This document shows, piece by piece, positions 1 to 54,260 of a DNA stretch of 64,000 bases. Each line of letters opens with the position of its first letter. Within the stretch, counting starts at the first letter, position 1. Under the pieces are notes generated by a model. That model was not told the origin of the DNA and ran no database searches. It saw nothing but the letters and a program-made list of their open reading frames with translations. The position numbers and the translations under genes were made by a program. The stretch comes from Asterias rubens (taxonomy: Eukaryota): assembly GCF_902459465.1 (NCBI RefSeq), contig NC_047068.1:14818001-14882000 (forward strand), read 5' to 3'.

Positions 1-351
1 ACAAATCTCATCGACTTCATACTTCTTAGAAAGCTTGATAAAGGAATAGACAGTATCTTTACTGATCTCAATTGTCTCTGTATACATGAACTTTAAAAAG
101 TCAGAGAAGATCACCTCATATTCTTGATCGTCCTCCAAGACATGTGGCTCGTCTGAGTTTGACCTCTTGAGTAACATCTCCTTGAATACTGGACTCCATG
201 AAGATAAGATCAGTTTATGGGCATGGAAGATGCTTGACCCAACCATCAAAGTGATGTCACTTAGACTGCCGCTGTCAAAGAATGGCGAAAGTTTGAGCAG
301 AAGATGATCACTGGGTTGAGTTTCGTCTTGGTCTTGAGATGGGTCATCAAA
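1..351 (-). pseudogene. BTB-BACK gene B, copy 1: 5' part of the main exon only (the rest runs off the left edge); start-codon exon deleted
   Basis: 1-812 matches 5725-6536 (offset 5724). The splice acceptor is retained at 352-354. The start exon seen in the other copies (6907-7030) lies inside a 976-bp segment missing from this copy. Confidence 0.8.
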
Positions 352-3324
352 CTGCTTGTGTTAAAAAAAGTTGGATAAAAGTGTGTTGTAAACGCATTGA
401 GGTATGACATTAGTAGTTAATGATCCGTGTTGTTACTTTACTTAAACTACCAATTGCTCACACTGTTTTATCGTGTTCTATAATTTTTTTCTTTAAGTAA
501 AAAAGATTACAAACTTTGCACATTACTCCCTTTAATGAAGACTGGTTACACTGTTGCGTTTTGTGTGTGTTAGAGTTAACAGTGTGTGACCTGTGAAATT
601 AAGGATATTTAGGACAACCAATGAGAGAATTAGGCTTTAGGCCTACGTAAGTTTGGTTTGGCTTGCTAGTGATTTAAAAACAAGGCTGACCAATAAGGTT
701 TGGTCTGCAAATGAGTGGCTGAAAGTTAGGCGGAAGCATATTTATTGTCACAGTTTATTTCTGGTAAGGACATTAATTTTGTCCAATTTCATCAAGTCTG
801 TTGAAAGGTCCATAAATTAGTTTATAAATTAATTGGTTTTAGTTTACAACAACAATATTAATTGATGAAATGAAAGTTCAGATAGGAAATTTCAGATAGG
901 ACATAACAAGCCCAAATGCCACCCTCACACTGAAGTCAATGGAGACATACCATTGGCGGTGAGTTGTGAACAGTACATACTTGCATGCATGTTTCCAAAG
1001 TTAGCATAGACAATGGCAACTTATGCTAAGGGTCGGTTACTGATCTAACTTGGTTTTTAAAGTCAAAGAACAGGGTTGGTATGTACACTCATGTAGTCAT
1101 ACACAGTTAATATTTCTCATTTCATTTCATTAATTCTGGGGACTTTCATTAAAAAGTGAACATGCAACAGCAATAACAGCCCCATGCAAAAATGACAAAG
1201 AAGGGTTTCAGTTTCTAATGTGGGAAAAATGCTTTGATTCTACTTACTTAAAAACAGAATTTTGTGAAGTTCAGCCACCAGCAAAGTCACCCAACCTGAT
1301 TCATCTCCAGAATGGTTGTAGAAGAGAAATAACTCAGGATACAAATTCTGTCAACCCTCAGCAGGAACAAGAGACTTGTCAAAAAATTTGCTAGCTGAAT
1401 TTCAGACACACAGTTTGTTCATATTACCAACTCATACCAACTTTACGAGCTTGCAATATCATACAAGGAACCCAATGCCAAACTATGCTGAAAAATCATT
1501 ATTATGGTACACTGAACACACCCACAACGGACAATGGAAATCACAACACAATCATTATTTGTTTACTCGTCAGTAAAAAAATTCTCAAAATTGGAATTCC
1601 TCGGGATGTGCAATGTCCCACAATCCCTTGGGCATAGTTAGTTATTGACCTGAAGACCAGATAACTTTGATGAACTTTGATATTTACAGAGCTGTGGATT
1701 CCAAGCAAAGATAATTCAGAAACTGTTTAGTGTGAACTCAAGTTGTACTCTAATCGCTATAAAAAAAAGTAAATAAACTCAATTTTTAAAGTTATTTAAA
1801 GCTGCAATAATGTCTAGTCTAGTGGGAATAATTACAAACATAGTTACTATCAGAGTTTGCTAATACATGTAAGTTGCAAGACAACAAGACTTTAAGGTTT
1901 CATTAAAAACTCAATGAGATTTTTGTATTATAAGGAAGACATGTTTTTGCTCATATTAGTGATGTAATAGGCCTAATTCATGAATGGATTTAACTGATTT
2001 GACCAGTTTCCTAGGAACTGTACAAAATGTTTTACTGTGAAACATGGACCCTAACTCAAAAGTCTCTAGACGGTTGATACACAGGGGCCCAATTTCATAG
2101 AGATGCAAGCAGAAAATATTGCTCAACATTTTTCTACTCAGCAGAAATGAGCACGATACCAGTCAAAACTTTTGACATGGTGGTTTGGCTTGTAACCTTA
2201 TTGTGGTTAGTGTAATTTTGTTATGCTTAGCTACAAAATTTGTGCTCAAGCAGCTCTATGAAATCCGGCAGCAGAATCAATGCTGATGAAAACAAGAATC
2301 TCTTAGTGAATTACCGAGCAGTCAACAATAATGTTTTGTACACGTTTTAATTTCAATCGCTTCATGCATACATTATTTTGTTTAAATAGCTCTTCAATGA
2401 AGGAAACATATGTCTGGTAACATTCCAGCTTTAGTGACATTCACAATAACCCATGAGTCTAGCAAGTGTCTTTTTGAGTCTTTTAAGGTCTATAAAAAAC
2501 TCACTGTAGGTGTTTTAAAAATCTTGACAAACTTTAACCTAAGGCAAATCAATTATGATAAACAGCTTGCCAAGTTGATCAATATTTTATTTTCTAAAAA
2601 TCTTGTTGCTGTGATGCATGTGCGATTAGGTTTACATTTTATATCTTCTCTACAATTGTCAAAATCAAACACTTTTTTGTTGGAGACATCAGTACTAGAA
2701 CGAGGGAGTCTTGAGTTCTGAACTTAGTGGAGGGCAGTAAGTAGCACATAATGCAAAATTTCCACAAAAGGGTCGAGCTTTAAAGGTTAAAGGCACTGGT
2801 ACAAACACTTTAGGTAATTTTCAAAGAATAGTTTTCTCCCTTGTTGTATCCAAATATAAAATAGCAAACCTGTGAAAATTTTGGCTCAATTGGTCATCGA
2901 ATTTGCAAGAGAAGTCTTTTACTATCTGAGTGATTTTTTTTAAACCTCTTTCTGAAAAACTACCTTGCTTCAGAGGAAGCCGTTTCTCACAATGTTTTAC
3001 ACTACCAACAGCTCTCCGTCGCATGTTACCAAGTAAGTTTTTATGCTTAAAATTACTTTGAGTAATTACCACAAGTGCTCCGCAGTACCAACATGAACAT
3101 TGGTCACAGAGTGAGAGCCCAAGAACAATGTGGATGTTGTGTAGTCATGGCGTTGGATCCTTATGGCACACCAAACAGCTATCCATTTGATTCTTTCCTA
3201 ATAGATTTGTGTCCTGAGTGAGTTTCAACTAAACGTTTTACACGTTTCACATAAAAAAAAAAAAATAATGTTAATAGTACCCCCCAAACCCCCTTTAGGC
3301 ACACACAACTGAAAAAAAAGTTGT

Positions 3325-4564
3325 CTACTTCTTTACCCAACTCTTATCACAACCCGAAATAAAAATTGCCACTTTTATCCAAAGGTGTTGAGGGCTACAA
3401 TCTAGAGCCTCCCAAGGTACATCCAGCTCTAGTTTCTTCCCAACATCTCCTTTAGCCACAGAGGAAATACAGTCAATGTACGTTTGGTCTTTCCTAATGA
3501 GCAATGCCATGACAAAGCTTCGTCCAATATCCTCAAAATGTGGTAGTACTCTGAACTTTATGCTCCACCTAGCTGCGTCATCTTCTTTGACAGCGCGACC
3601 ACCGACTTTCCACATGTCTTCGTTAATGAGGTACACATTCCCCTGTTCTCCCTGACGCGCCACAGGACAAAACAACTTGAACTTTTCAAAATGTTCAAAT
3701 TCTTTATCCTCTTCCTCCTTTTCAAGAGTAAGCCGTCTGAAGGGTGATGATTCCACCTGATGCTGACACACAGGGTTGGATATTCTTACGCAGAACTCTG
3801 GCTCCATGTAGACACGAGGGTCGGAAAATCTAGCCATGCTGGTGTATGAGCCCTCCCCTGCAAATGCCCTGTACTTGAATGCCTCAAACACACACTCCTT
3901 CAGCATCGGCTGGAGTATTAGAGACTGTTCCAGAAATGACAGCTTTTCCAAATCTCTTGCCGGGATGTGCTCATAACGAATCAGTGACAAAACTTGCTTA
4001 ATCAGTCCTTCCAATTCCACACGGTTCTTGCTGAGCCAAGCTTTTGCCCTACGAAGCACAAACTTCTCATTAGGAACGACTAGGCCCGATCTACCCAGTA
4101 AAGCAAGAAAAACATCAGGCCGTAGGTTGTTACTCTCTGGTATTGCATAAAAGTTGTTTTCCATGAGACTGTAGCACTTTTCCTGGATCCTAGTAAGCCC
4201 CTCTGTTGCCGTTGTCATAGCCTGTACAGCATCAACCCAAGGTGTTGTTGTTGATTCTAATACTTGCATTAGATACGCTTCACAAATCTCATGAAGATCA
4301 CTGACCATATACTTGTCAGCCAATAGCAGCATAGGGTGTACAGTCTCTTTGGTCAGCTCCAGTTCTTCTGTGTACATGAATTTCAGGAAGTGTTCAAAGC
4401 AGTCAGCACAGTCTTCTGGCTCATTCAGTGTCTGGGTGCGGACACTGTCGCCACTTGGTTTTGGTGCCCATTTCTTATCAAAAAGCATCGTCTTGAAGAT
4501 TTCACTCCAAGTACCGAGTATGAGTGAATGGGCGTGGTAGGAACGCGTGCCAACTTTCAGAGTT
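3325..4564 (-). pseudogene. 5'-truncated copy of BTB-BACK gene A (unit 1)
   Basis: Matches 16457-17696, but is cut at the duplication junction within the first BTB strand (SDVT|LKVG). It lacks the start exon and the native acceptor. The ORF stays open to the stop at 3325. Confidence 0.85.
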
Positions 4565-4644
4565 GTGACATCACACTACGGACTCAATTTTAACAAGACA
4601 ACATGCTTTTATAACAAGTTTTTCTTTACTTTATAGTTGGCCAA

Positions 4645-7005
4645 CTACCAGTACCATGGATTTAGAACTAATCCCGGGTCATTTTCATAACTCATGGGCC
4701 AAAAGTCTGATAGCCTCACCTCCAGTTCTTCTACATATATGGGTTCTTTGGGCATCTGCAAGTGGTCCCAAAAACGGTGAGAATTTCTCACCATGACAAC
4801 AACTTTTATCTCGACTGACCCAAGTTCTCGATCAACCTCAGCATGGTGAAGAACCTGCTCTACTTTGACTTCTGTTTCTGTTACAACTCCTTCAGAAGTT
4901 GTCACGATTGGATTCATGTGTGGCCTAACACGTGTCAGTATCACCAAACGATATGTACCGCCTATATGATTTTGGTCTGGTTTTAACCGGTAACTAATTT
5001 CCCATTTCTCAGATTTTGCGTTGAAGCATTTTGATCCAGTAAGTGACCACATACAAGACTCGTCTGATAAGGTGTCATAAGCAGACACACTAGTAACAAG
5101 TAAACTCAACGCTTTGGGGTTTTTTTCTGACAAACTCAGATGCTGATAGTTACTACTGACAGGCCCCGAGATGCAAATACGAGGTTCAACACAATGTTTT
5201 TTAGATAAGGTGCTTTTTGTGTCACATGGAAGAAGACTTAATTCTTTTTCCTCAGATACAAGAGCTTTCCACTCAAAAGCGTCATGAATTGAATCTTGAA
5301 GACCTGAATCATTCAGTGAACTTTGGATCTGCAGTGACCTATCAGACATAACAGCGGGAGCTGTAATTCCTCTTTTAAGTGAACAGAGATCTAAGGAGGA
5401 CATATGGGTAAAGTGAATCTTGGAGATGACTTCCTTAGTGTACTTATCATAGTCATGACCACCTGTGTAAAGCCAATCAACAGCTTGATTGAAAAGATGC
5501 CTTTCACTTAGCACAACCAGGTCGGAGCTCTCCAACATCTTAAGAAACAAACTCGGACCCATCTTTTGTAAAGAGGAATCGGATAGGTGAAAAAAGTTTG
5601 TTTCAAGGAACTTGAAACAGTGATCATACATCTTGGTAAATCCAAACTCTTCAGCATCTGTAAGTGTTTGGAGGGCTATAGTGTCATTGGAAACCTCTCC
5701 TATAAGAAATTCCTCACACAGCTCACAAATCTCATCGACTTCATACTTCTTAGAAAGCTTGATAAAGGAATAGACAGTATCTTTACTGATCTCAATTGTC
5801 TCTGTATACATGAACTTTAAAAAGTCAGAGAAGATCACCTCATATTCTTGATCGTCCTCCAAGACATGTGGCTCGTCTGAGTTTGACCTCTTGAGTAACA
5901 TCTCCTTGAATACTGGACTCCATGAAGATAAGATCAGTTTATGGGCATGGAAGATGCTTGACCCAACCATCAAAGTGATGTCACTTAGACTGCCGCTGTC
6001 AAAGAATGGCGAAAGTTTGAGCAGAAGATGATCACTGGGTTGAGTTTCGTCTTGGTCTTGAGATGGGTCATCAAACTGCTTGTGTTAAAAAAAGTTGGAT
6101 AAAAGTGTGTTGTAAACGCATTGAGGTATGACATTAGTAGTTAATGATCCGTGTTGTTACTTTACTTAAACTACCAATTGCTCACACTGTTTTATCGTGT
6201 TCTATAATTTTTTTCTTTAAGTAAAAAAGATTACAAACTTTGCACATTACTCCCTTTAATGAAGACTGGTTACACTGTTGCGTTTTGTGTGTGTTAGAGT
6301 TAACAGTGTGTGACCTGTGAAATTAAGGATATTTAGGACAACCAATGAGAGAATTAGGCTTTAGGCCTACGTAAGTTTGGTTTGGCTTGCTAGTGATTTA
6401 AAAACAAGGCTGACCAATAAGGTTTGGTCTGCAAATGAGTGGCTGAAAGTTAGGCGGAAGCATATTTATTGTCACAGTTTATTTCTGGTAAGGACATTAA
6501 TTTTGTCCAATTTCATCAAGTCTGTTGAAAGGTCCACAGACACAAGGCTCTACTCACAAACAAAACGCTCTACTCACAATGATTTTGTATAGTATTTTTC
6601 AATTTTGAATGGTAAAACCGAGATTAAAAAAAGAGGAAATCAGCTGATCTGAGGAACAGTCACACGATTGTACAGACTCATATACACGAGGGACCTCTCC
6701 TTATTCGGGAGTTATCATTCACAAGATATCTTGTGCTATATCACATGGGACAGTTTACAGGCAAACTGTCACATTAATTTCTACAGAGTATGGGTATGTA
6801 CTGTAACAAAATCACTGTAGAAATCTGTATGGTATTTTATAAACACCCGTTTAAATTTGAGAGGATGGTCTAAAAGTGCAAAATGAATCAAAGTAAATAT
6901 ACCAACCTGTTCTGTATCTTCTATTTGATGTTCTTGCAAAGCAGCAAGAAAAGCCATGTGTGATGCCATTCCACGAATAAAATCTCCACTATCTATTAAA
7001 TCCAT
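4645..7005 (-). CDS. BTB/POZ-BACK protein B (BTBD17/LGALS3BP-like, ~509 aa), intact copy; coding exons 7005-6907 and 6075-4645
   Basis: BTB motifs SDITLMVG..FHAHKLILSSWSPVFKEM and FLKFMYT; BACK motifs VLSERHLFNQAVDWL and IHFTHM; then AFEWKAL..EPRI. Exon 1 (MDLIDSG...EDTEQ, 33 codons) ends CAG|gttggt in phase 0. Acceptor ttttttaacacaagcag|TTT at 6075 is in phase 0 (1431 nt to the stop). The track start at 5973 is an internal TTG. Confidence 0.85.
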
Positions 7006-7356
7006 TGCGATTGTGAAACTACATTTGGATCTGAAAATTTGAACGAAAAAAAGAAGTTTGGGGGCGATTGTCAGAAAAAAAATACATGTATCGTGAAAGA
7101 TATTCCTGATGAACAGAGATTGACAGATCAGAGAGAACATCAATATGGGGCTCAGTTGGTAAACTCAACTGGAGTTTGCAGTTCAAATCCTGCTCTATAG
7201 GCATTTTTATACTCGTTCACCCCTTCCCCTGTAATTTTTGTTTGCTTTTTTGTTTCCGAACATCAGAATTATATAATCTTAAAACACACATGCATTTGGT
7301 TCAACGGGTGATACGTAGAGAGCACCAGGAAAAAGCCTAGGCTTATACAGGGCCTG

Positions 7357-7503
7357 GGGTGGATTTCACAAATAGTTAGGACTAGTCTTATCTCAAGTTA
7401 GGACCAGTTACTCGTCCTAACTTAGGACTATCCATGCAATTTGTATATCTCCCAGGACTAGTCATAAGTTAGGACTAGTCCTAACTCTTTGTGAAATCGA
7501 CCC
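7357..7503. mobile_element. PIF/Harbinger-like MITE (GGGTGGATTTCAC... TIRs, CWG target duplication); other copies at 14054-14200, 21542-21708, 34544-34683, 43259-43405
   Basis: Terminal inverted repeats gggtggatttcacaaa / tttgtgaaatcgaccc are flanked by ctg on both sides, with internal ttaggactagtcctaa palindromes. The superfamily call rests on the 3-bp CWG TSD and GG termini. Confidence 0.75.
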
Positions 7504-10020
7504 CTGATCCCTTTAGTTTATAAATTAATTGGTTTTAGTTTACAACAACAATATTAATTGATGAAATGAAAGTTCAGATAGGAAATTTCAGATAGGACAT
7601 AACAAGCCCAAATGCCACCCTCACACTGAAGTCAATGGAGACATACCATTGGCGGTGAGTTGTGAACAGTACATACTTGCATGCATGTTTCCAAAGTTAG
7701 CATAGACAATGGCAACTTATGCTAAGGGTCGGTTACTGATCTAACTTGGTTTTTAAAGTCAAAGAACAGGGTTGGTATGTACACTCATGTAGTCATACAC
7801 AGTTAATATTTCTCATTTCATTTCATTAATTCTGGGGACTTTCATTAAAAAGTGAACATGCAACAGCAATAACAGCCCCATGCAAAAATGACAAAGAAGG
7901 GTTTCAGTTTCTAATGTGGGAAAAATGCTTTGATTCTACTTACTTAAAAACAGAATTTTGTGAAGTTCAGCCACCAGCAAAGTCACCCAACCTGATTCAT
8001 CTCCAGAATGGTTGTAGAAGAGAAATAACTCAGGATACAAATTCTGTCAACCCTCAGCAGGAACAAGAGACTTGTCAAAAAATTTGCTAGCTGAATTTCA
8101 GACACACAGTTTGTTCATATTACCAACTCATACCAACTTTACGAGCTTGCAATATCATACAAGGAACCCAATGCCAAACTATGCTGAAAAATCATTATTA
8201 TGGTACACTGAACACACCCACAACGGACAATGGAAATCACAACACAATCATTATTTGTTTACTCGTCAGTAAAAAAATTCTCAAAATTGGAATTCCTCGG
8301 GATGTGCAATGTCCCACAATCCCTTGGGCATAGTTAGTTATTGACCTGAAGACCAGATAACTTTGATGAACTTTGATATTTACAGAGCTGTGGATTCCAA
8401 GCAAAGATAATTCAGAAACTGTTTAGTGTGAACTCAAGTTGTACTCTAATCGCTATAAAAAAAGTAAATAAACTCAATTTTTAAAGTTATTTAAAGCTGC
8501 AATAATGTCTAGTCTAGTGGGAATAATTACAAACATAGTTACTATCAGAGTTTGCTAATACATGTAAGTTGCAAGACAACAAGACTTTAAGGTTTCATTA
8601 AAAACTCAATGAGATTTTTGTATTATAAGGAAGACATGTTTTTGCTCATATTAGTGATGTAATAGGCCTAATTCATGAATGGATTTAACTGATTTGACCA
8701 GTTTCCTAGGAACTGTACAAAATGTTTTACTGTGAAACATGGACCCTAACTCAAAAGTCTCTAGACGGTTGATACACAGGGGCCCAATTTCATAGAGATG
8801 CAAGCAGAAAATATTGCTCAACATTTTTCTACTCAGCAGAAATGAGCACGATACCAGTCAAAACTTTTGACATGGTGGTTTGGCTTGTAACCTTATTGTG
8901 GTTAGTGTAATTTTGTTATGCTTAGCTACAAAATTTGTGCTCAAGCAGCTCTATGAAATCCGGCAGCAGAATCAATGCTGATGAAAACAAGAATCTCTTA
9001 GTGAATTACCGAGCAGTCAACAATAATGTTTTGTACACGTTTTAATTTCAATCGCTTCATGCATACATTATTTTGTTTAAATAGCTCTTCAATGAAGGAA
9101 ACATATGTCTGGTAACATTCCAGCTTTAGTGACATTCACAATAACCCATGAGTCTAGCAAGTGTCTTTTTGAGTCTTTTAAGGTCTATAAAAAACTCACT
9201 GTAGGTGTTTTAAAAATCTTGACAAACTTTAACCTAAGGCAAATCAATTATGATAAACAGCTTGCCAAGTTGATCAATATTTTATTTTCTAAAAATCTTG
9301 TTGCTGTGATGCATGTGCGATTAGGTTTACATTTTATATCTTCTCTACAATTGTCAAAATCAAACACTTTTTTGTTGGAGACATCAGTACTAGAACGAGG
9401 GAGTCTTGAGTTCTGAACTTAGTGGAGGGCAGTAAGTAGCACATAATGCAAAATTTCCACAAAAGGGTCGAGCTTTAAAGGTTAAAGGCACTGGTACAAA
9501 CACTTTAGGTAATTTTCAAAGAATAGTTTTCTCCCTTGTTGTATCCAAATATAAAATAGCAAACCTGTGAAAATTTTGGCTCAATTGGTCATCGAATTTG
9601 CAAGAGAAGTCTTTTACTATCTGAGTGATTTTTTTTAAACCTCTTTCTGAAAAACTACCTTGCTTCAGAGGAAGCCGTTTCTCACAATGTTTTACACTAC
9701 CAACAGCTCTCCGTCGCATGTTACCAAGTAAGTTTTTATGCTTAAAATTACTTTGAGTAATTACCACAAGTGCTCCGCAGTACCAACATGAACATTGGTC
9801 ACAGAGTGAGAGCCCAAGAACAATGTGGATGTTGTGTAGTCATGGCGTTGGATCCTTATGGCACACCAAACAGCTATCCATTTGATTCTTTCCTAATAGA
9901 TTTGTGTCCTGAGTGAGTTTCAACTAAACGTTTTACACGTTTCACATAAAAAAAATAAAAATAATGTTAATAGTACCCCCCAAACCCCCTTTAGGCACAC
10001 ACAACTGAAAAAAAAGTTGT

Positions 10021-11260
10021 CTACTTCTTTACCCAACTCTTATCACAACCCGAAATAAAAATTGCCACTTTTATCCAAAGGTGTTGAGGGCTACAATCTA
10101 GAGCCTCCCAAGGTACATCCAGCTCTAGTTTCTTCCCAACATCTCCTTTAGCCACAGAGGAAATACAGTCAATGTACGTTTGGTCTTTGCTAATGAGCAA
10201 TGCCATGACAAAGCTTCGTCCAATATCCTCAAAATGTGGTAGTACTCTGAACTTTATGCTCCACCTAGCTGCGTCATCTTCTTTGACAGCGCGACCACCG
10301 ACTTTCCACATGTCTTCGTTAATGAGGTACACATTCCCCTGTTCTCCCTGACGCGCCACAGGACAAAACAACTTGAACTTTTCAAAATGTTCAAATTCTT
10401 TATCCTCTTCCTCCTTTTCAAGAGTAAGCCGTCTGAAGGGTGATGATTCCACCTGATGCTGACACACAGGGTTGGATATTCTTACGCAGAACTCTGGCTC
10501 CATGTAGACACGAGGGTCGGAAAATCTAGCCATGCTGGTGTATGAGCCCTCCCCTGCAAATGCCCTGTACTTGAATGCCTCAAACACACACTCCTTCAGC
10601 ATCGGCTGGAGTATTAGAGACTGTTCCAGAAATGACAGCTTTTCCAAATCTCTTGCCGGGATGTGCTCATAACGAATCAGTGACAAAACTTGCTTAATCA
10701 GTCCTTCCAATTCCACACGGTTCTTGCTGAGCCAAGCTTTTGCCCTACGAAGCACAAACTTCTCATTAGGAACGACTAGGCCCGATCTACCCAGTAAAGC
10801 AAGAAAAACATCAGGCCGTAGGTTGTTACTCTCTGGTATTGCATAAAAGTTGTTTTCCATGAGACTGTAGCACTTTTCCTGGATCCTAGTAAGCCCCTCT
10901 GTTGCCGTTGTCATAGCCTGTACAGCATCAACCCAAGGTGTTGTTGTTGATTCTAATACTTGCATTAGATACGCTTCACAAATCTCATGAAGATCACTGA
11001 CCATATACTTGTCAGCCAATAGCAGCATAGGGTGTACAGTCTCTTTGGTCAGCTCCAGTTCTTCTGTGTACATGAATTTCAGGAAGTGTTCAAAGCAGTC
11101 AGCACAGTCTTCTGGCTCATTCAGTGTCTGGGTGCGGACACTGTCGCCACTTGGTTTTGGTGCCCATTTCTTATCAAAAAGCATCGTCTTGAAGATTTCA
11201 CTCCAAGTACCGAGTATGAGTGAATGGGCGTGGTAGGAACGCGTGCCAACTTTCAGAGTT
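10021..11260 (-). pseudogene. 5'-truncated copy of BTB-BACK gene A (unit 2)
   Basis: Same junction and truncation as 3325-4564. I saw one coding difference between these two copies (R/S at LLIRKD/LLISKD). Confidence 0.85.
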
Positions 11261-11340
11261 GTGACATCACACTACGGACTCAATTTTAACAAGACAACAT
11301 GCTTTTATAACAAGTTTTTCTTTACTTTATAGTTGGCCAA

Positions 11341-23847: not shown

Positions 23848-26392
23848 TTAATCAACATACACTGCTTCCCTTGTGTAAACATATTCGGGTTTCTTCTCGA
23901 AGGTGAACGGTGTAAACAACATAAAACCATCAGCTGCCCCTCGAGCTCCCCCTTTAGCAACCACCCCACTAAACACAATAATGATCGGATCCAGCACATC
24001 TTCCTTAATCTTGATGCTCAGAGCCAACTTGATCTTCTTATTAATGTGGTCCTTGGATGGCAACACAAGAAACTGTAGTCTCCATAGGCTACCTTTGTTC
24101 TCCTGTGCAGAGCGTACCCTCACCTCCCAGCTCTCTCGGTCCTCTTGCTGGTAAATGCCTTTCTTGGCTCGCCACACAGTCGCCCGGTGGTCTGAATAGG
24201 CGGTCAAAGAGTTACTACACCGAATGCGGGTATACAGGTCTGTTGAATCTCTCTTGCTTGATAGCTTGCTCGATAGCTTTCCCCCAGGGGAGACGTACTT
24301 CAGGTACAGACGGGGAGGGACAAAGCATTGCTCAGACACCTCCAAGAAGTCAGTCTCCTCGGATGCTAGGGCGCGGGCTTGGAGGGCATCTATGATGACC
24401 TCCGGGTGCTTGGTGGAGATGAGAAGGCCGAGTTTTGTTTTCTTGATTTGCTTCAGCTGCCAGATTGTCATGTTAGAGAAGCGGATATGGGGAAGAATCT
24501 TCTCAAGATTCTCCAAGATATGTTCCTCTTTACCTCCCCTACAATCAATCCATGTATCAATCTGAAATTCAATCAAGAGATAATCAAATTAAAAAAATGG
24601 CTGAAAAATATAGCACCAAGACCAGGACAAGGGCAACAGTGGTCATGGCCTCTGCTCCCTGTCAAACTAGGCCTGAGAAAAAAATATTATATGAAAATAT
24701 CAGGTTTTTAAAACAAAAGTTCTAAAGACAAATGATTGTACTTTTTTCTTTACCAACATACTTGTTGAAGTCCTAAAGAAAACCAAGATAAAAGTGAGCA
24801 ATTCTATACAAAATGGGTCAAAAGATACATGTGAAAATTAAATTTCAAAAGGTAGTTGCGTTTATCGCCGAAAATCCGCAGTAAATATGTCTGCGACCAG
24901 GTAGGAAGAATAATCCCTAATAATAGGAATCACAATCTCAGAAAAACTACTAATGCATCTTTTGGGGCATCAAAACTGAAATTTTTTACTTAACCAAACT
25001 ACTTGTTTTGAAATGTTTCTCACAATACTTTATACTATGGAAAGTTGCTGTAGGCTTCTGATTAAAAGTTTGTAATTATTTTTAAGAGTGATACAAAACA
25101 TAGACCTGCCCTTTAATAACCAGAAAGAATCAACATCAACAATGATCATCAAACTTTTGTATTATTGAACATGAAGTCTCTTTCTTATTGGCCATTTTGA
25201 CACATTGCTAGCTTAGTTTTCAGATGCAATAAAGTAAACCAAGATTCTAAAAAATAAATTTTCCATCTTAAAACTTACCCTCGAAAAGAGAGCATATTCA
25301 TCTTCCACCACAACTTCTGAGCTTTCAATAATGCTAATCATTTGATCAAGGCGTAGTACTTGCCAGGAAACATCCGGAATGTACTGGAAGTACGCACGCA
25401 GCACCTTCATACAGTTCTCCTGGAGTAGAACGAGGCGTTTCTTCTCTGCCTCTGCAAGCCACTCCAAGGCTTTATCCACACTGTGCTGGCCGATCTCTTT
25501 CCCGATAAACTGCTCACACAACTCCTGCAGTGGTTGGATCTTGTATTCCTGTGCCAAGTTCATGATCACCTTGACTGTAGTTTCAGTCAGATCGGCCTTT
25601 CCGGAGTACAGGAAGCTGAAAAATGTTGAGAGGCCGCCGTTGATATCAGTATTGCCACCGCTGTCTACTGAGATACCAGGGTCAACGTCTATGACAAGTA
25701 GCTCCTTACAGTCGCCCCCCTTTGCTGGTTTGCTTCCTTTGGCAAGTCTCTCTTCAAACACAGGACTCCATGCACTGAGGATCAGTCTGTGTGATCTGTA
25801 CTGAATGTAACCACACCGGATTAAGACATCGCTGAGCTCGGGCTGGTTGAAGAAACTCTTCATGTGGTTAGCAAGGGCACCAAACTTCCTGCAGGTCTTC
25901 CGTCCGGATTTCTTACCCTCTCCCTCAGCATCATCATTTGACCCCTCCATCTAAAATAAAACAAATGTGAAAAAAAAAAAAAAATTAGTTAAATTAGTTC
26001 CTTTTATCTAAAAGACTAGAACAGAACAGGAATATCTTTTTGAACATCTGCAAAACTCAAAAGTTTGAATGAATTGGTGTCTACAGCTTTCGCTGAAGTT
26101 TTTGCATCATAATGCGTTGAAGTACAGGACATATTTAGCAACACCCTTAGCAAAGGTCATAACTGTAGCTGCCATATCCAATTCAGTCTTAAAGTTAACT
26201 CATGTCAATCGCCATTTTTTTCTGTACAGCAGATGATGTAAAAATGGACCAATCAGAGAAGACTGCCCGTAAAACAGTTTTGGATCCTTTTTCCTCTCAC
26301 TGGCCACTTGTTCTGATGTCTTTTTGTTTTTGTTTACTCACTTTTGGTGTCTTTATCGAAACTCCTGGCTGCCAGTCCATATCCGATGCCAT
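23848..26392 (-). CDS. BTB/POZ-BACK protein C (~478 aa); coding exons 26392-26342, 25950-25279, 24561-23848
   Basis: Motifs FFNQPELSDVLIRCG, SHRLILSAWSPVF, FFSFLYSG, LAQEYKI, VVVEDEYALFSR|IDTWID, IRFSNM, PPRLY. Donors AAA|gtgagt and AGG|gtaagt, acceptors ttattttag|ATG and aatttcag|ATT, all phase 0. The first exon is less certain. Confidence 0.85.
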
Positions 26393-26757
26393 CAGTTTGC
26401 TTAAGAAATAAAAACCAAGAGAAGAAATTTAGTAGTAGAATGGGTTTGGCCAGTTACAAGTTGAGCCAAGAATAAAAAACAGAACTGAAGTAATTTGAAC
26501 TGGAGTGATAAAAAATAAAAAAACATCTAAAAAAAAAAAAAAAAACTAAACATATGAAAGTTACAAAAATATAAAATAAAATCAATTAATTAACAAAATA
26601 AATAAACTTTGGTAGTGCTGTAGTAGTGGATATGATTATTGCAGGCACCTTTTACTTGAACACTTAGGGCCTATAAGCAGGTTTACAGTACAACACCGTC
26701 TTTGGCGTTGTTTGCATGAATTTGCATACATGTCAGGTAAAGTAAAATACCCCATCT

Positions 26758-26848
26758 GTGCTTTGTGTAGAAACATATATGGACACGCGTCTGGGAACTA
26801 CAAAGAATAGTTCCCAGACGCGTGTCCATATGTTTGTACACAAAGCAC
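26758..26848. repeat. ~90-bp near-perfect inverted repeat (hairpin)
   Basis: gtgctttgtgtagaaacatatatggacacgcgtctgggaacta / tagttcccagacgcgtgtccatatgtttgtacacaaagcac. Confidence 0.75.
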
Positions 26849-27025
26849 GGATCGGGTTTATTTTCTTTCAGGACGAACGTGTGCAGATAATTCTCCACGT
26901 TTGTCCTGGAAAAAAAATATGCGCACGGTCGAGGACAATCGGCATTAGTAGTGTAGCGGTAAAAGAGCGGTAGTTGAGAAAATTCACACTAAAAATTAAT
27001 TCGGTTTTTACTGAAAACCTGTGAT

Positions 27026-27432
27026 ATATGTGACCCGCTACGTGAAAATGAGTCAGATGTCGCCCAATGCATTATTAAGTAATGGACAGTTTAATGTGAA
27101 AAAAATTTTTTTTAAAATCTATATTTGGATGTTTAACCGTTAGAACACTTCCTTTTAGGCAATAAAGCTTTGAAAACAACCATTTTGTGATCCTACTTAT
27201 GTCTTATTTGTATCCTTTTGCACGAAATGGTAGTTTAAAACATCACGCTACTTGTAATTCGTTTTTCAGACACACTGATGTGTTGGCTCATTTCAAACGG
27301 AACTAACTCCGCAACGCGATACACCCCAAGACATATACCAAATTACTGCTGTTGGTGTGGTCTTTCCATGCATATAACTCAATCCTTTAAATTGTCAACA
27401 TCTGACTCATTTTCACATAGTGGGTCACATAT
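27026..27432. mobile_element. MITE with ~35-bp TIRs
   Basis: atatgtgacccgctacgtgaaaatgagtcagatgt ... acatctgactcattttcacatagtgggtcacatat. Confidence 0.7.
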
Positions 27433-27701
27433 TTGAACAATTCCAAGTGTAGGGCTATCTCATCTGCAACTTCTGAAGCATTTAGATCGGTAAGTTACAT
27501 GATGCAGATCGTTGCACTTGCAGATGGTTTTTCAAGAAAGCGAAAGATTTTGATATCAGACGTGATGGGGCCAAGGATAAGGAGTGGATTGGACCGATTT
27601 ATGGGGCTAGTAGGCTATATAAGCAGAGTTTTGCTAAAGGCAATTTAACGGAGCGTGATTTGCCGGTTCATGGGGTGGTTGGTGGCCGAGAGGACTTTTT
27701 G

Positions 27702-28472
27702 GGGTTGTTCTAAAACCCCCTGGACCCACGACCCCCTCGACCCCTCGACTTTTGTGCGATTTTTTTTTCTGTACACTGAAATTGCCACAGTTCACAACCT
27801 CAGCCAATCACGCACACAATTTTGTATGCTGACGTCGACTACCATGCCTTGCTCATCACAACACAGCGTACGAGACAGACCATACACACGTAGTATGCAC
27901 GAAGCAAACTTCACGTGTTTGGCTGCTGTGATCGGGCCTGTGGCAATTGTGATGTACATGTGTACAGATAAAGAAAACGCGGCATTTCCACGCGTATTTC
28001 TTGGCAGATCCGAGATTATTATCCCAACTGGGAACCTGCGTTTACCGCCCGAGTACGATTACGGCCAACTCATTACGTGATGATCAGGCGGACCCATTTC
28101 CGGCCGATTGCTCCCGTCCTGTGCTGTGTACTTCCATGGTACTGAAGCGGAGCTCAAGGTTGTAGACCCGACCGATCAAATTGCCCACACGTGTTTTGGG
28201 GTCCCCAATCGTTGTGCATGTGACGTGCGGAAGCGGAGAGTAAATACTCCCAATTCTGTGTGTGGCTCTGTGTGTGTGACTTGAAATCAAGCCTAGTCGT
28301 GGAAGGAAAATTGCGTCGCGGATCACACACTTCTAAATCGGGGACTTAAATTAAATTCTTACTCAGCCGTAAAGCGACATTTCATAAATTCGGAATTGGG
28401 ACATTCTTCGAACACGGGGATGACGTCGAGGGGTCGTGGGTCGTGGGGGTCGAGGGGGTTTTAGAACAACCC
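27702..28472. mobile_element. Non-autonomous Mutator-like (MULE) element, 771 bp, with a 9-bp TSD
   Basis: TIRs gggttgttctaaaaccccct... / ...agggggttttagaacaaccc. A perfect 9-bp direct repeat GACTTTTTG is present at 27693-27701 and 28473-28481. Confidence 0.8.
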
Positions 28473-30043
28473 GACTTTTTGCCCGATCCGATGCACTTAC
28501 TTTTTAACGTTTTTTTAGTGAGATGTTTAATTACTTTATAAATTAGATGAAATTGAAAGAAACAATCCTAAACTAGACATTAAGTGTTTGTGAACAAACA
28601 CGAAGCTGTTCCTTGTTGTTTTGCTTGGATAAAGAAACAATCCTAAAAAAAAACAACTATTACTAAGCATCGACTTAAAAACACTTACCTTAAATTCCTT
28701 TGCGTAATCTACAAATCTTTAATGCGCCTTTAAGTGTCATAAGGTCGACCTCACACACCAAAAAAAGACAAATTATTGACTTGGTTGAAGCATAGAGACT
28801 TACTCTATCTATGGTTGAAGTTGTTGCGCGGTGTTGCAAGAAAACGGGGATTTTTTTAGCACGAAATATAAGTTTAGAAAATAGCGCCACCATGTGTATT
28901 GCTGATGCCATGGTAAGGAAAGCCCAAGGAACAAAACACACAAATTTCACCACCTCCGGATTGCTTCACAACCGCTGCCAGATGGAGTGGAGTAATCTGC
29001 TACAGTTTTACAGGGTTTTAACGCGGTTTTAATTTATCAAGTTTTCAGTCCATTTTTTAGGCCACTAAAATGGTTGTTATGGAACATGACCAGCAAAAAC
29101 TACTATATTTGTATAGGAACAGAGTACGTTTTGTTTGCATCATTTGTTACATTTTTGGGGCTCCATAAGTTTTCTACAACTAGGCCCTTTTCGAAACCAC
29201 GGCTTCGGCTCCAGATTAGGCTTAGGCTTGGCCCCGCGGTACGTGCTCAGCAGGCTTGGCTTCAGATGAGATAACGGAGACTGAAGCCGAATCCAAAGCC
29301 AAAACCGTATGTTCGAAAAGGCCTGTCACAGTCGTGCATTAATTTGCAAGAAATGCTGGCGGTAGTGTCGGCTGCATGGAGTGTTAATCGACCTGTTTGA
29401 CAGCAATAACACTCATTTATTCCAACAAGCAGTACTCTTCTCTTTCTGATATCTCCAGTCATTCAACAACTAAGGACGAATTCAGTACGTGAGAATAAAA
29501 AATAATTGGTCTAATCATGGATGGAGGTGGTAGGGCCTAGACATTTTAAATTTTTAATTCTCTACCTCCGCTCCATCATCCATGAATGAATGAATGATTT
29601 GATTTTGATGAGTTGATGGTCTGAATGATTTTGATTATGATCCTAAGTTTACACCATGTTGTTATTTTTGGTAATTGTATTGTAATGTTTATAGTATTTT
29701 TGGATAATCTTCCGCACGTCGCCACCAATTTATCCGCGGTTAATTAACTCCAAAACCACAGAATTTTTTCCTTACCTGGCTGAGAAGAAGGGTTACCGCA
29801 TGTCTAGTAATAATTATAATTTATTCAAATCAAAGTCAAATGAAGTTTTTAAAAAAGGGACATTTTCAACATTCCTTTTGTTGGAAAGGTTTCCGTATGG
29901 CGCCACCACTTTTTCATTCGAAATAAAATAATATAGTATCTAATTTACCTGATTGATATATCCATTTTTGTAAAAATGAGTGAAAAAGTGGTGGCGCCAT
30001 ACGGAAAGTTATCCCTTTTGTTTGGTAAAATGTGAGTGAAAAA

Positions 30044-30166
30044 TAGACCCAGTAACTGGGGGCGCTGGGGCGCTGTACTCCTTTTTCGAAATTTTGACAT
30101 TCTCCGAGAATGTCAGAATGTCAAAACTTCGAAAAAAGGAGTACAGCGCCCCAGTTACTGGGTCTA
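30044..30166. mobile_element. Palindromic MITE (tagacccagtaactggggcg TIRs); related ends near 18706, 38497, 38695-38712 and 38770-38790
   Basis: An almost perfect inverted repeat spans the whole element and is flanked by TA. Confidence 0.6.
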
Positions 30167-30752
30167 AGTGAAAAAGTGGTGGCAGGATACGGAAATCTTT
30201 CTCGCTGGATTGCAGAGTATACTGTTCAATTCAAACGTTGCGATCCAAACTGACGTGGACCAATTTCATAGAGCTGCTAAGCACAAAAATTTGCTTAGCA
30301 TGAAATGTTTAGCCTTGATAAAAACAGGATTACCAACCCAATTCCCACGTGATTTTCAGGATAAGCAAACAACATCTGAATACCAATAACAAGCAGTATG
30401 CAACAAATAAAAAATTTGTTGTTAATCCTGTTTTTATAAAGGAAGAAATGTCATGCTAAGCAAATTTTTGTGCTTAGCAGCTCTATGAAATTGGGCCCTG
30501 AGCTTGATAGTAGAACTATAAGTTTTAGAACCAACACTCCACAAACAAAAGAGATTTTACACGTGGTTGTACAGTGTACAAGCAGGTTTCCTTATAACAG
30601 ATAATTCTTACTCCGAGAACTATGAGGTTTGTGGAATCGTATATCGATAACGAAGCGAACCTCAAATTTCTAAAGAAATTTCTAGGATTATGCTAATTTT
30701 GTCAAAACAATTATTATTATTTTTATTCTCTTGACCTTTCTAGTAAGTAAAG

Positions 30753-33671
30753 ATGATGTTTGACGACTATGACGTGGATTATGATGATGATGACATCGAT
30801 GATGAGTTTCTGTACGATGCTGGCTCGGACGACGACGAATATTTCATGACTAGGAACGGAGAGCTGGTTTATGCTGGCGATGTCTATGAAGACTACTATG
30901 AATATGCCAATCATTTCGCAAAGAGCTCTCACTATTCGAAAAATGATTACTACAAAATGGAGGAGGCAAAAGTGAGATTATTCGCCAAATTTGTGTTAAT
31001 GATATTGGTCAAACCTTGCTTGCATGCTTCAGGGCTCGAATTTGGGGTTAAAAACCACAAGAACGCAGGGCTTTGTACGTAGAGCCCTTTAAAATGTTTA
31101 CTAGACCAGAATTTCATTTAACAAGACCGAACTTAAAAGGAGTTGAACTAGGACAAGATCTTGATACATGTAGATCTTAATTGTTTATGAAAGCGTACTT
31201 TGAATTGATATTCAAGAGAACTGAAGATATCAGATTGTTTTCAAAAAGTTTTCACAATGAGGTAGCCCATTATTTATTATTGAACGGAAACAGTAAGACC
31301 ACCTGGCTTGACAGGTCGGGAGTTTGAGTTCACTGGCCCGACGCTAAAATCTCTTGCCTCTGGCCTGAGGTCCAGTGTTAATTTTCAGCCCATGCTTCAT
31401 TTTTGAAAGGGCACCACAGGCATTTTCTCCTTTGTGTCAAAGGGCACCCTGTGAGGAAATAGTAAATTTCTACTGGAGCAATTGAAGGACACCAATGCAA
31501 TGACCAGGGGGCATGGAGGCAATCGCCTTTGCTGCCTTTATGGTGACGTATCAGGCCTGACCTTTAAAGGCAGTGGACACATTTGGTAATTGTCAAAGAC
31601 AAGTCTTCTCACTTGGTGCATCTCAACGTATGCATAAAATAACAAACCTGTGAAAATTTGAGCTCAATTGGTCATCGAAGTTGTGGGATAATAGTGAATG
31701 AAAAACACCCTTGTCACACGAAGTTGTGTGCTTTCAGATAATTGATTTCAAGACCACAAATTCTAAACTTGAGGTGTTGAAACCAAATTCGTGGAAATTT
31801 ACTTCTTTCTCGAAAACTATGGCACTCCAGAGGGAGCCGTTTCTCACAATGTTTTGTATTATCAACAGCTCCCCATTACTCATGACCACAGTAAGGTTTT
31901 ATGCTAATAATTATTTTGAGTAATTACCAATAGTGTCCACTGCCTTTAAGAAGACCCATCCAATTAAAATCCAACGGTATGATTAAATGTTTGGTTATGT
32001 AAGAGGATTGCACTTGTAAACTAAACTTTTAAATAAAAAACCTTAACATTGAAGTTATTACGTCCTGACTGCTGATAAAGTTTTCCATTTATGAAACAAT
32101 GTTGTCCTATTCCTGATAGCAAATTGTAGTTGGGTCTTAAATCTTAATTTCTGCTGCCTTGCATTAAATAAAACAAAACAATGTCTGCTATTTCCCAAAA
32201 CAAAACGATGTCTGCTGTTTCCTCAAGATCTTCCTCAAATCAAGGACAATTTTAGTTTTAGAAAAGGAACATCTGTTGCTTCAACTCTTATTTACACTCG
32301 TAATTTCTTTTCAATTTGCAGAATGAACTTGAGACCAACAATAAGCTTCTGGTCGGTGATCGCATGGCACGTTTTCTTAACAACCCTAAGCACAGTGACG
32401 TGACGCTAAAAGTTGGCCGTACTGTTTATCACGCCCATAAGATAATCCTTTGTTCCTGGAGCGAGGTGTTTCGGAAAATGTTCATCGATCCTTTGTGGTC
32501 CAGTCCAAGGAAAGGTGAAACCAACAGGCCGGGGCCTCAACAGCAGGTGCTTGTCGAGCCAGATGAATGCGTCAAGGTCTTCAAGGACTTCTTGAAGTTC
32601 ATGTACACAGAGACGGTAGAGTTGAGCGCAGAGAGAGTGTATCCCATCCTCACACTGGCTGATAAGTACATGGTTCAAGATTTGCGTGATGCCTGCGAAG
32701 ACTTTCTTCTAGAAGAAGTTGCTCACATCAGTGGGGAGGAAGCCTTGAAATTGTACGCAGAAGCGGAGAGACTTGGATTGGAAAGAGTCCAAGACCAATC
32801 AATCAAGGTTTTAGAAGCTAATATCGGCTACCTACCAGAGAGCTGCATACAGAGCATGAATGCTGATCTCCTCATCAGGTTACTTCAGAGTTCAAAGCTG
32901 CTAGTTGAAGACGAGCATGCCGTGTGTGAGCTTGCTGTGCAGTGGCTTAGCGTCGAGGGAGAACAAGCGGAGCGAAAGGTACACGCAGTGGAAATCTTAT
33001 CGCTTATCCGCTTTCCTCACATGCCATCTAAAAAACTCAAGAGCATTCTTGATTCATCACTACCACAGGATATGGAGAATGCCTACAACTCCAAGTTGAC
33101 GGAAATGATTTACAAAGCATTTGAATGGCGGGCCCTAGTCGCAGAGGAGGCGCACACAGCCATGGAAGATGATTTCGTGGAGCCGCGCATATATCTGAAT
33201 CAAGCCTTTTCACTTCACAACAAGGGTTTCTCAAGCATGACCCAAAGTGATGGTGAAAAGTTTCGGAAACTGACACTCTACACCGAAGAACAAGACGATT
33301 ACTACCACTCTAAACTCACCTTCCGTGCTTCCTCAGCAACCGACAAAAACATCTACAAGTTTGGTAAAAGTTCCTGGGAGGTGAGCGCCTATTCCTCCAA
33401 GGAATGCGATGCCTGGAACATTAACTACACCATCCGAACGAGTCAAGAGCTTGGACAGCCGTACAGAGTAGCAGTCTTAACTCGCCTGACTGATGAAGGC
33501 CAGGACCCCATAGTAACCATACACGATGGAAACACTAAGGAGAAGTTCACGCTTAGTGTTTCCTCAGCTCTGCTTAAACTCAACGAGATGCCCATCAAAG
33601 TGTGGACCAAGATGGCAATTTTTATAGGGAGGAAGAAGAGTGATCCAAACGCACACATACACGTGGACTGA
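30753..33671 (+). CDS. BTB/POZ-BACK protein D (~522 aa) with an acidic Asp/Tyr-rich N-terminus; coding exons 30753-30971 and 32322-33671
   Basis: Motifs FLNNPKHSDVTLKVG, YHAHKIILCSWSEVF, FLKFMYT, LTLADKYMV, LLVEDEHAV, IRFPHM, AFEWRAL..EPRIY. Donor AAA|gtgaga after 73 codons and acceptor ttttcaatttgcag|AAT are both phase 0. An upstream acceptor cctttctag lies at ~30743. Confidence 0.88.
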
Positions 33672-52541: not shown

Positions 52542-53985
52542 CTAGAATTCCCAGAGGGTGCTTTTGTTTGCTTCGACCCCTGTTGCACGCATTTCTCCGT
52601 GTTGTTTGCCCTCTAGGAGTCGACCGTTGGAAGCACGGATAAGGAACTTTGATCGCTCTAAGAACTCCAAGGTGAACTTCTCTGGTGCACCTTCACTCAA
52701 CGTGTAGTTGCCGTCACCGTCGGCTGTCCACGCCTTGGTTTCGTCACGACCTGTACCCAAATACACGGAAAAAACTGTTATTGCTTCACGCATGTCAATA
52801 GTTGTACTCTAGACCTACTTAAATTTCTGCCGTTTAAATTGAATGGAATATTGAAGAATTTTTGTTTTCATTCGAGAGGAACTTGGATTGTGACTCATCC
52901 CTTGGTTATAGATAGCGCCCTCTATCAGCAGTAAGTCTTTCTTTGAAAACAAAACAAAAAACACAATGGCTTGACGTTTCGACACGGGAGTCCTAGTTAA
53001 AATCTGAACCGACATTGAACAGAAAAGTCTTACCTCTGAAGATGTAAGTTCCATCATTCTCATATGATACTTGGATGATCTCATTGTCCGCTGTTGTTCG
53101 GTTGCACTCGAGCATCTTCCTCAGGCCGACGAAGCCATGTTCCCCCTTCAGTACCAGGTTGGGTCGGTTGCTCAGCTTGAAGCGGAACTTCTCGGTGTTT
53201 GTGACTTCGGAGCCGGATGCCACCAGGGGGCCGCTGCTCTTGATGCCGACGAATTTGCCGTTGGAGACGGCACGAAGCGATACGGTGCCCTCATCGCCGT
53301 AGACGAGCTCGAACAGGCAGGCTTCTTTTCTAGAAGATTTGAAAAGGGGAAGGCGAAGTTTTACAAGGAGCAAGGCACATTGAGTGGATTTCGTTTTCCA
53401 ATAATCTTCTGACATTATCAACATCACACACTATCACATTCCACATAATAGTTTTAGGCCTTAAAACATTTAAACGTCTTGAAGTAAAGAAAACAAATGT
53501 AGGACGTACAACCAAACAAAAATAAACACAAGCTTAATTCAGAAGATACCAATCCGTCTTGTCTTTGTAATTCGGCTTTCTATTTTGTTAAATCTATCCC
53601 TGTCTTTTAAGATTCGAGTGAGAAATTACCTCTTTCTCAAAAACTCTAGTTGCTTCAGAGAAAGCCGTTTCCCACAATTCTCTATACTATCAACAGCTCT
53701 CCATTGCTCGTTACCAATTATAAGTTTGTAAGCTAACAATTATTTTGAGTAGTAACCATAATAGTGTCAATCCATTGACTCTAAGTTCTGATATTGTTCT
53801 TGAGAATGGACCAGTCACTAACCTGGATAATCCCTTGTTGAGGATATCCTGCTTGCCAGCATCCATGGCCCAGTACTTGCCATTGGAGCTGCGGATGGCC
53901 CACTCGTTCTTCTTGCCAACGGCGCATTCCAGCTGGAAGGTCTCGGTGTCTGATTCTTCATGCTGATTGGCGGACACGTGGATAT
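52542..53985 (-). CDS. FSCN: Fascin (actin-bundling beta-trefoil protein), last three exons: 53985-53823, 53329-53034, 52750-52542; 5' part not in the window
   Basis: Motifs VSANQHEESDTETFQLE, RSSNGKYW, LRAVSNGKFV, KLSNRPNLVLKGEHGFVG, RASNGRLL and the terminal STLWEF* match fascin repeats 3-4 as I recall them (human FSCN1 LSANQDEETDQETFQLE ... SLWEY). Splice sites are GT-AG with phases 1, 2, 1. Confidence 0.93.
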
Positions 53986-54260
53986 CTGCAAAATGGCGGG
54001 AATATAAAAAGTATTTGGTGTTCAATTGTTGGCATGGTTGAAACGTGCGTTTTAAATAACATTGTGCGTGATATCAATTGGACGCAGGCATGAAATTACC
54101 TCCGTTGTCCCATTTATTCCTAATTATTGGGCGAAAAGAAAATGAAGTTTGTTAAATTAGACTACTGTCTAACAATACATTTAACAATCCACTTGAAAAT
54201 GTATACTTTTATGTTATGTGAGAAAACGTTACTGGAACACCTGTCGTAATAACTTTTTAA

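Follow-up and report, generated by a model that had tools for sequence, protein, structure and literature searches.

The window analysed here is a stretch of 64,000 nucleotides from the starfish Asterias rubens (contig NC_047068.1, positions 14,818,001 to 14,882,000 of the forward strand), and positions 1-33671 of it hold a cluster of BTB-BACK genes that resemble BTBD17 and LGALS3BP. Four paralogous lineages are present, which we call X, Y, C and D, and they lie where an earlier note on this DNA had placed them. Gene models were built from the listing of open frames, tblastn searches and the reading of splice sites, and the stretch contains no run of N. Gene D is on the plus strand, with a first exon (30753..30971) encoding an acidic, Asp/Tyr-rich N-terminus and a second (32322..33671) encoding the BTB and BACK domains, a linker and a C-terminal beta-sandwich. 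It is 100% identical to the RefSeq protein P0001 (522 amino acids), annotated as BTB/POZ domain-containing protein 17-like, and the largest open frame, 32316-33671, is identical to P0001. The other three lineages are on the minus strand. The C protein, 461 amino acids in all, is encoded by exon 1 at 25279..25950 (N-terminus, BTB and the start of BACK, with the donor AGG/GTAAGT) and exon 2 at 23848..24561 (the end of BACK, the linker and the C-terminal beta-sandwich). X has its main exon at 16457..17812 and an acidic, tyrosine-rich coding exon upstream at about 18373..18498; residues 1-4 come from an exon still further upstream, whose position we did not locate, and the full gene gives rise to P0015 (497 amino acids) and P0012 (489 amino acids). 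RefSeq labels these genes BTBD17-like, gigaxonin-like, kelch-like or uncharacterized, and a literature search on echinoderm BTBD17-like genes found no paper on them.

Y is present in three copies, which alternate with truncated copies of X (X') in a tandem array at 817..15107. The 6696-bp unit of the array (truncated X, spacer, Y) is repeated head to tail, 817-8423 matching 7513-15107 at 99.25% identity, and positions 1-812 match both 5725-6536 and 12422-13233 at 100% identity. Each unit consists of Y followed by an X' that starts 80 bp past the Y stop codon, and the order on the minus strand, X, Y2, X'2, Y1, X'1, Y0, is that expected if a segment running from X codon 85 to just past Y had been triplicated. 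Y1 has an intact main exon at 4645..6081 (minus strand; BTB, BACK, linker and C-terminal beta-sandwich) and a first coding exon of 33 codons at 6907..7005, placed by analogy with P0021, the RefSeq model of Y2. The main exon of Y2 lies at 11341..12778 (minus strand) with a +1 frameshift near 11800, and its first coding exon at 13604..13702 is the one in P0021. A first exon modelled on P0006 was also sought and is absent from Asterias; the real one came from P0021. Y0 enters the window as the 5' part of its main exon, found by tblastn at 1..357 (minus strand), and extends before the window start, where locus L004 of the A. rubens genome covers the rest of it. Its RefSeq model, P0020, has a different, two-codon start. 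A 976-bp segment with the first coding exon of Y occupies 6537-7512 and 13234-14209 and is missing, between 812 and 817, from the unit nearest the window start.

The X' copies, X'1 at 3325..4566 (minus strand; a 387-amino-acid open frame, P0014) and X'2 at 10021..11262 (minus strand), lack codons 1-84, begin at X codon 85 with a stop codon directly upstream, and are probably dead. They differ from each other by one nonsynonymous change, hence one amino acid, and from X by 11 coding substitutions, a synonymous divergence (dS) of 0.015. For comparison, dS between X of A. rubens and X of its congener A. amurensis is 0.054, and no X' was seen at the A. amurensis loci compared; the triplication is therefore younger than the split between the two species. 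Y1 and Y2 differ over 1.5 kb of alignment by one substitution and one indel, whereas the 3' end of Y0 has diverged by about 33 substitutions. Every frame-breaking difference among the three Y copies falls in a single homopolymer, which is G A7 C4 in Y1 (near 5119-5128), as it is in A. amurensis, is longer by one in Y2 (GG A8 C3) and shorter by one in Y0. The break in Y0 lies outside the window, and its shifted frame is open to the stop codon. The frameshifts in Y2 and Y0 may be errors of long-read assembly.

All four proteins share one architecture, as the earlier note had described it. Pfam finds BTB (PF00651; E 1.5e-15 to 2.3e-22) and, downstream, BACK (PF07707; E 8e-5 to 2e-15) in X, Y, C and D, and in the same scan neither SRCR nor any other domain. 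A PR[ILFM]Y motif opens the C-terminal beta-sandwich of roughly 130 residues in all four; across 24 aligned echinoderm sequences its arginine is invariant and its tyrosine is kept in at least 90%, the tyrosine being replaced by cysteine in Asterias Y. The paralogues do align only loosely, with 20-50% identity in the BTB domain and 16-28% in the C-terminal domain. Their N-termini, which the note had called unrelated, are so only in part, since D and X have an acidic, tyrosine-rich first exon in common and the first exon of Y resembles that of the Patiria Y orthologue; the D exon 1 N-terminus is itself kept in Patiria and Acanthaster, and a sea cucumber relative resembles it. The absence of a signal peptide held up as well: a hydropathy scan of the full annotated proteins found no N-terminal hydrophobic stretch and no transmembrane segment, the annotated N-termini being charged with a maximum 10-residue hydropathy of at most 1.55. 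With neither a signal peptide nor an SRCR domain seen, the X, Y, C and D proteins are likely to be intracellular, as far as their sequences tell.

The starfish genes form an echinoderm-only sister branch of the BTBD17/Tango10/LGALS3BP family. In a profile search that covered 1.84 billion representatives, scores fell sharply after the starfish proteins, from at least 463 bits to at most 245. A maximum-likelihood tree, carefully built from 37 proteins, takes Pfam-positive BTBD17-type proteins as its root; in it the echinoderm-only clade has support of 100/99 and the starfish genes lie outside the canonical clade. Within the echinoderm clade, C groups with sea urchin proteins (97/93), and is therefore older than the divergence of starfish from sea urchins. 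D, X and Y together form an all-starfish clade (98/98) whose sister is a clade of sea urchin and sea cucumber proteins (94/91). The individual clades of D, X and Y (each 100/100) contain Asterias plus Patiria and/or Acanthaster orthologues, Y orthologues persisting in both of these genera, so that all three genes predate the divergence of Asterias from Patiria and Acanthaster.

D, X and C keep a conserved gene order in the other starfish where orthologues were found. Acanthaster planci has C (minus), D (plus) and a leucine-rich repeat (LRR) gene (plus) in the same order as the window. In the window, 38996-40234 (plus strand) is a 412-amino-acid open frame packed with leucine-rich repeats (LRR_8, E = 3e-41), and we regard the LRR gene as a conserved neighbour because the Acanthaster gene, of 683 amino acids, has the same position and orientation downstream of D. 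In Patiria miniata 7 kb separate the X and Y orthologues, and the chromosome that carries them also carries D. Patiria also has, at L001 1-8187, a gene for a 563-amino-acid BTB-BACK protein (minus strand) with an annotated start between X and Y and a span that includes X; this may be the D orthologue, with a 5' exon far away and X inside its intron.

In A. amurensis the order is D, C, X, Y, Yb1, Yb2 and then an orphan membrane-protein gene, and it is at this same orphan gene that the A. rubens array ends. At the orthologous position A. amurensis has an unannotated Y that has lost 55 bp by deletion. Yb1 and Yb2 are both intact, have 77% nucleotide identity to Y, and lie in a 13-kb interval that A. 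rubens lacks. Comparison of the two loci thus finds D, C and X collinear and the Y part completely different between congeners. At L005, Yb1 (10499-11926) and Yb2 (16212-17654) are merged as one RefSeq gene with isoforms of 476 and 579 amino acids. Their BTB regions have zero synonymous differences against a dS of 0.02-0.27 in the rest, which suggests gene conversion of the 5' part. A 136-amino-acid histone-fold gene model (plus strand) is listed across the whole of both L003 and L005, over the BTB cluster, and is probably an annotation oddity, either a very long intron or a mis-joined model. Counted by lineage there are four, with one to three Y-type copies per locus examined. D has one orthologue each in Patiria and Acanthaster, X one in Patiria and C one in Acanthaster, and all three have one in A. 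amurensis; this statement covers the starfish where an orthologue was found.

Selection divides the cluster in the same way. D, X and C are under purifying selection, the ratio of nonsynonymous to synonymous divergence (dN/dS) between A. rubens and A. amurensis being 0.10 for C (with zero nonsynonymous changes in its C-terminal domain), 0.125 for the first 206 codons of D exon 2, and 0.21 for X. The Y pair at the orthologous position has a ratio of 0.38. Among Y-type paralogues the ratio is 0.2-0.3 in the BTB domain, 1.75-7.9 in the linker between BACK and the sandwich, and 0.85-0.9 in the C-terminal sandwich; the 3' part of Y1 versus Y0 gives 2.2 (29 nonsynonymous and 4 synonymous changes), which is not significant. 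In the linker of Yb1 versus Yb2 there are 25 nonsynonymous changes and 1 synonymous change (Fisher's p 0.019, uncorrected for the many segments tested). Were the observed number of differences placed at random, the C-terminal halves would be free of stop codons with p 0.005 for Yb1 versus Yb2 and at most 0.0004 for Y1 versus Yb. Over longer distances, identity in the BTB, BACK and C-terminal domains is 72/62/54% for D and 52/39/43% for X (Asterias versus Patiria), 50/63/46% for C (Asterias versus Acanthaster) and 44/45/29% for Y (Asterias versus Patiria). Judged from these sequences, the C-terminal half of Y evolves fast yet stays coding, a pattern that is compatible with diversifying selection and is no proof of it.

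Structural comparison bears out the likeness to BTBD17 and LGALS3BP that had been recognised by eye. The full-length model of D has a mean predicted local distance difference test score (pLDDT) of 69.5, with BTB-BACK at 84-94 and BACK helical, and a beta-sandwich at 388-508. Its best Foldseek matches in AlphaFold-SwissProt are BTBD17 of frog, human and mouse (E 4e-19 to 3e-17), with LGALS3BP next, and the alignments extend through the C-terminal domain. In the ESM Atlas the template modelling (TM) scores are 0.62/0.67 to BTBD17 over 395 residues and 0.65/0.59 to LGALS3BP; the clusters nearest D are those of BTBD17 and fly Tango10, both carrying PF23651 (TRAF_BTBD17), and the Tango10 cluster has a language-model feature score of 0.94 to gene D. 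The PRxY motif is shared with the canonical BTBD17 family, in whose alignment the arginine is again invariant and the tyrosine invariant or nearly so. Placement of the starfish genes as canonical BTBD17 orthologues was itself ruled out by the tree and the missing PF23651 match.

The C-terminal domains of D, X, Y and C are mutually homologous (hhalign probability 98-99%), and the isolated domain was modelled at pLDDT 83. This model finds MATH/TRAF proteins in AlphaFold-SwissProt (Foldseek, E about 2e-3), the USP7 TRAF-like (Z 6.6), SPOP MATH (Z 5.7) and TRAF6 (Z 5.4) domains in the PDB by VIA-align, and the CYHR1 TRAF domain in the ESM Atlas both by structure (TM 0.52) and by features (0.88); Foldseek against the PDB returned nothing significant. 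As the matches are weak yet concordant in type, we keep the TRAF/MATH-like assignment of the modelled domain as a lead. A PHR-type C-terminal domain, as in BTBD1/2/3/6, was rejected, because Pfam gives no PHR match and the isolated domain matches sandwiches of the MATH/TRAF type.

We suggest, with a probability of roughly 60%, that the locus is a small, old cluster of genes for intracellular BTB-BACK-sandwich proteins, present in three starfish genera, in which D, X and C are stable and Y turns over in tandem. C would be the oldest paralogue, with relatives in sea urchins, and D, X and Y would have arisen by duplications in the starfish lineage before Asterias separated from Patiria and Acanthaster. 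In the Y subfamily the BTB domain would have remained nearly constant while the linker and C-terminal domain changed quickly in frames that stay open. After the split from A. amurensis, triplication of the segment from X codon 85 to just past Y would have left A. rubens with three copies of Y and with two of X that lack the 5' end and are probably dead. By their BTB domains the proteins would form dimers, and the TRAF/MATH-like sandwich could bind short motifs in partner proteins; if fly Tango10 is a guide, a bound partner may then be handed over to a cullin ligase. Since the CUL3-contact motif is degenerate, the proteins are about equally likely to act as scaffolds independent of any ligase.

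Several observations weigh against this interpretation or parts of it. PF23651, which matches canonical BTBD17 members at E 5e-27 to 6e-53, matches none of the four starfish proteins and none of the 24 echinoderm C-terminal domains; alignment to the canonical domains by hhalign gives E 0.003 or worse (0.068), with PRxY as the sole aligned segment. For the isolated domain, the fold matches score within the noise (Z 6.6, TM no higher than 0.52). Two of the three A. rubens Y copies are frameshifted at one homopolymer, whether in reality or by assembly error, and the excess of dN/dS above 1 depends on few sites, its best nominal p of 0.019 preceding any correction. Finally, the phi-x-E site of CUL3 contact in the alpha3-beta4 loop, which corresponds in alignment to L-S-E in KBTBD2 and W-x-E/D in canonical BTBD17-type proteins across a loop of varying length, reads W-S-S in D, W-A-P in X, N-S-D in Y and K-P-A in C, so that the acidic residue of phi-x-E is gone in all four genes and the tryptophan also in Y and C. 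In KLHL3, substitution of the phi-x-E glutamate impairs CUL3 binding. Because this glutamate is replaced in every one of the starfish genes, recruitment of CUL3 by X, Y, C and D is possible by analogy with their relatives and unsupported by the contact motif, and the connection to CUL3 is weaker than the earlier note had assumed. Relatives with cullin partners do exist: Tango10, the one relative with a demonstrated CUL3 partnership, co-immunoprecipitates with CUL3, and depletion of CUL3 reproduces the Tango10 mutant phenotype (PMC8617488); for LGALS3BP the reported links are to complexes of cullin-7 and cullin-9 and not to CUL3 (PMC7672578).

The earlier note had read the cluster as a whole as a repertoire of diversifying CUL3 adaptors that would serve intracellular surveillance or immunity and evolve by birth and death, in the manner of the MATH-BTB and F-box genes of nematodes. 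What it had claimed of birth and death does apply to the Y lineage, where copy content differs sharply between A. rubens and A. amurensis, and its variable C-terminal domain is recognisable in Y, where dN/dS in the C-terminal halves is about 0.85-2.2 and in the linker as high as 7.9, all in open frames. The weak TRAF/MATH-like matches, the binding of CUL3 by fly Tango10 and the interferon stimulation of LGALS3BP (PMC5015019) would all fit as well. Neither claim extends to D, X and C, however, which are single orthologues in conserved order with dN/dS of 0.10-0.21; stable one-to-one orthologues under purifying selection are the very pattern that the note had named as contrary to diversification. 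Nor is this an expansion of the nematode kind, the repertoire being tiny (four lineages and at most three Y copies), and the loss of the phi-x-E glutamate tells against CUL3 adaptors in particular. We therefore consider a diversifying repertoire across the whole cluster quite unlikely. Much the same low credence attaches to a narrower and bolder version, in which Y would be a rapidly diversifying intracellular recognition module: on a constant BTB-BACK dimerisation scaffold it would carry a TRAF/MATH-like end subject to repeated positive selection, and tandem duplication and loss would reshuffle that end from one sister species to the other. Any immune or surveillance role of the cluster is speculation.

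The contrary possibility, that Y is a redundant paralogue drifting to loss under relaxed constraint, with early pseudogenisation, in a cluster of otherwise ordinary housekeeping or developmental BTB proteins, is unlikely, if to be taken seriously. The unannotated A. amurensis Y with its 55-bp deletion, the two frameshifted A. rubens copies, the cysteine in place of a near-invariant PRxY tyrosine, and dN/dS values near 1 that are statistically indistinguishable from neutrality all speak for it. Set against these, none of the three A. rubens copies has its frame broken before the stop codon once the homopolymer site is put aside, Yb1 and Yb2 are intact where random substitution would be expected to place stops in the C-terminal halves with a probability of at least 0.995, the BTB domains of Y are still constrained, and Y has orthologues in Patiria and Acanthaster. 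The tandem array, or at least its frameshifts, might instead be an artefact of assembly, through stacked haplotypes or unpolished long-read homopolymers, in keeping with copies that are 99.25-100% identical and frame breaks that all lie in one A7C4 run whose intact state is that of A. amurensis. We find this very unlikely, as more than two full periods of the array stand in continuous sequence with no N gaps, the units have distinct structural differences (the 976-bp segment with Y exon 1 is absent from the one nearest the window start), Y0 has diverged at its 3' end, and X' differs from X in its coding sequence.

An old and mostly stable cluster with one volatile member is a modest result of comparative genomics and no new system. 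To our knowledge, BTBD17 has hardly been studied, and what is known of LGALS3BP mostly concerns a glycoprotein that is secreted and induced by interferon. A branch that is intracellular and confined to echinoderms would show how the scaffold of BTBD17 and LGALS3BP evolves outside vertebrates; its C-terminal domain escapes current Pfam models, and one of its members turns over from one sister species to the other. With D, X and C stable and Y volatile, the branch offers a tractable contrast for finding out what the TRAF-like end binds. If the Y genes proved to be immune-regulated, a BTB-based family would join the diversified recognition gene sets of echinoderms; if Y were in truth a recognition module, it would be a starfish counterpart of the MATH-BTB or TRIM-type host-pathogen adaptors, with a link to LGALS3BP, the antiviral, interferon-induced vertebrate relative.

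Some further features of the window lie around or beyond these genes. At least six copies of an interspersed repeat, each about 390 bp long and 77-93% identical, are scattered over both strands (17924-18216, 22179-22521, 31558-31952, 35662-35958, 54254-54641 and 59914-60307), and three of them flank BTB genes; the repeat is probably a short non-autonomous transposon. The spacer between X and C contains a 219-bp unit duplicated in tandem at 19184-19610 (2.0 copies, 96% identity). Two minus-strand open frames, 52993-53427 and 53711-54025, match Pfam Fascin (E 2e-6 and 3e-8), and from their sequences are probably exons of one fascin-like gene.

Among known systems, vertebrate BTBD17 and LGALS3BP (the latter also named BTBD17B, Mac-2BP or 90K) are the closest in plan, with the same order of BTB, BACK and C-terminal beta-sandwich and with PRxY opening the last domain. 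They differ in that the starfish proteins have about 17% sequence identity to them, carry a C-terminal domain that PF23651 misses, and belong to a separate echinoderm-only clade. As a secreted glycoprotein, LGALS3BP carries both a signal peptide and an SRCR domain (PMC5015019), and the starfish proteins have no signal peptide by hydropathy scan and no SRCR domain; no solved structure of an LGALS3BP BTB-BACK region turned up when a single sequence was searched, nor in the top 60 of 100 profile matches. Fly Tango10 is alike in being intracellular, and its cluster, with the architecture of BTB, BACK and TRAF_BTBD17, is among those nearest gene D; it is unlike in that its architecture group of Pfam-positive BTBD17-type proteins keeps the W-x-E/D that the starfish genes do not.

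The BTB-BACK part is also homologous to that of KLHL11, KBTBD2 and KLHL3 (PDB profile search, E 1e-25 to 1e-21) and matches KLHL11-CUL3 complexes by Foldseek at E about 3e-12, although the starfish proteins have no Kelch propeller, have another C-terminal domain in its place, and do not conserve the phi-x-E glutamate of the BTB-BACK-Kelch proteins. MATH-BTB families undergo lineage-specific tandem expansions with fast-evolving binding domains. With such proteins (SPOP, the BATH proteins of C. elegans and TDPOZ) the starfish genes would share the combination of a BTB dimerisation module with a substrate-binding beta-sandwich of TRAF/MATH type, and it is to MATH and TRAF domains that the best, if weak, matches of the isolated C-terminal domain are made. 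In contrast, the order of domains is reversed, MATH coming before BTB in SPOP, Pfam finds no MATH domain in the starfish proteins, the structural scores are no better than noise, and the starfish repertoire is very small.

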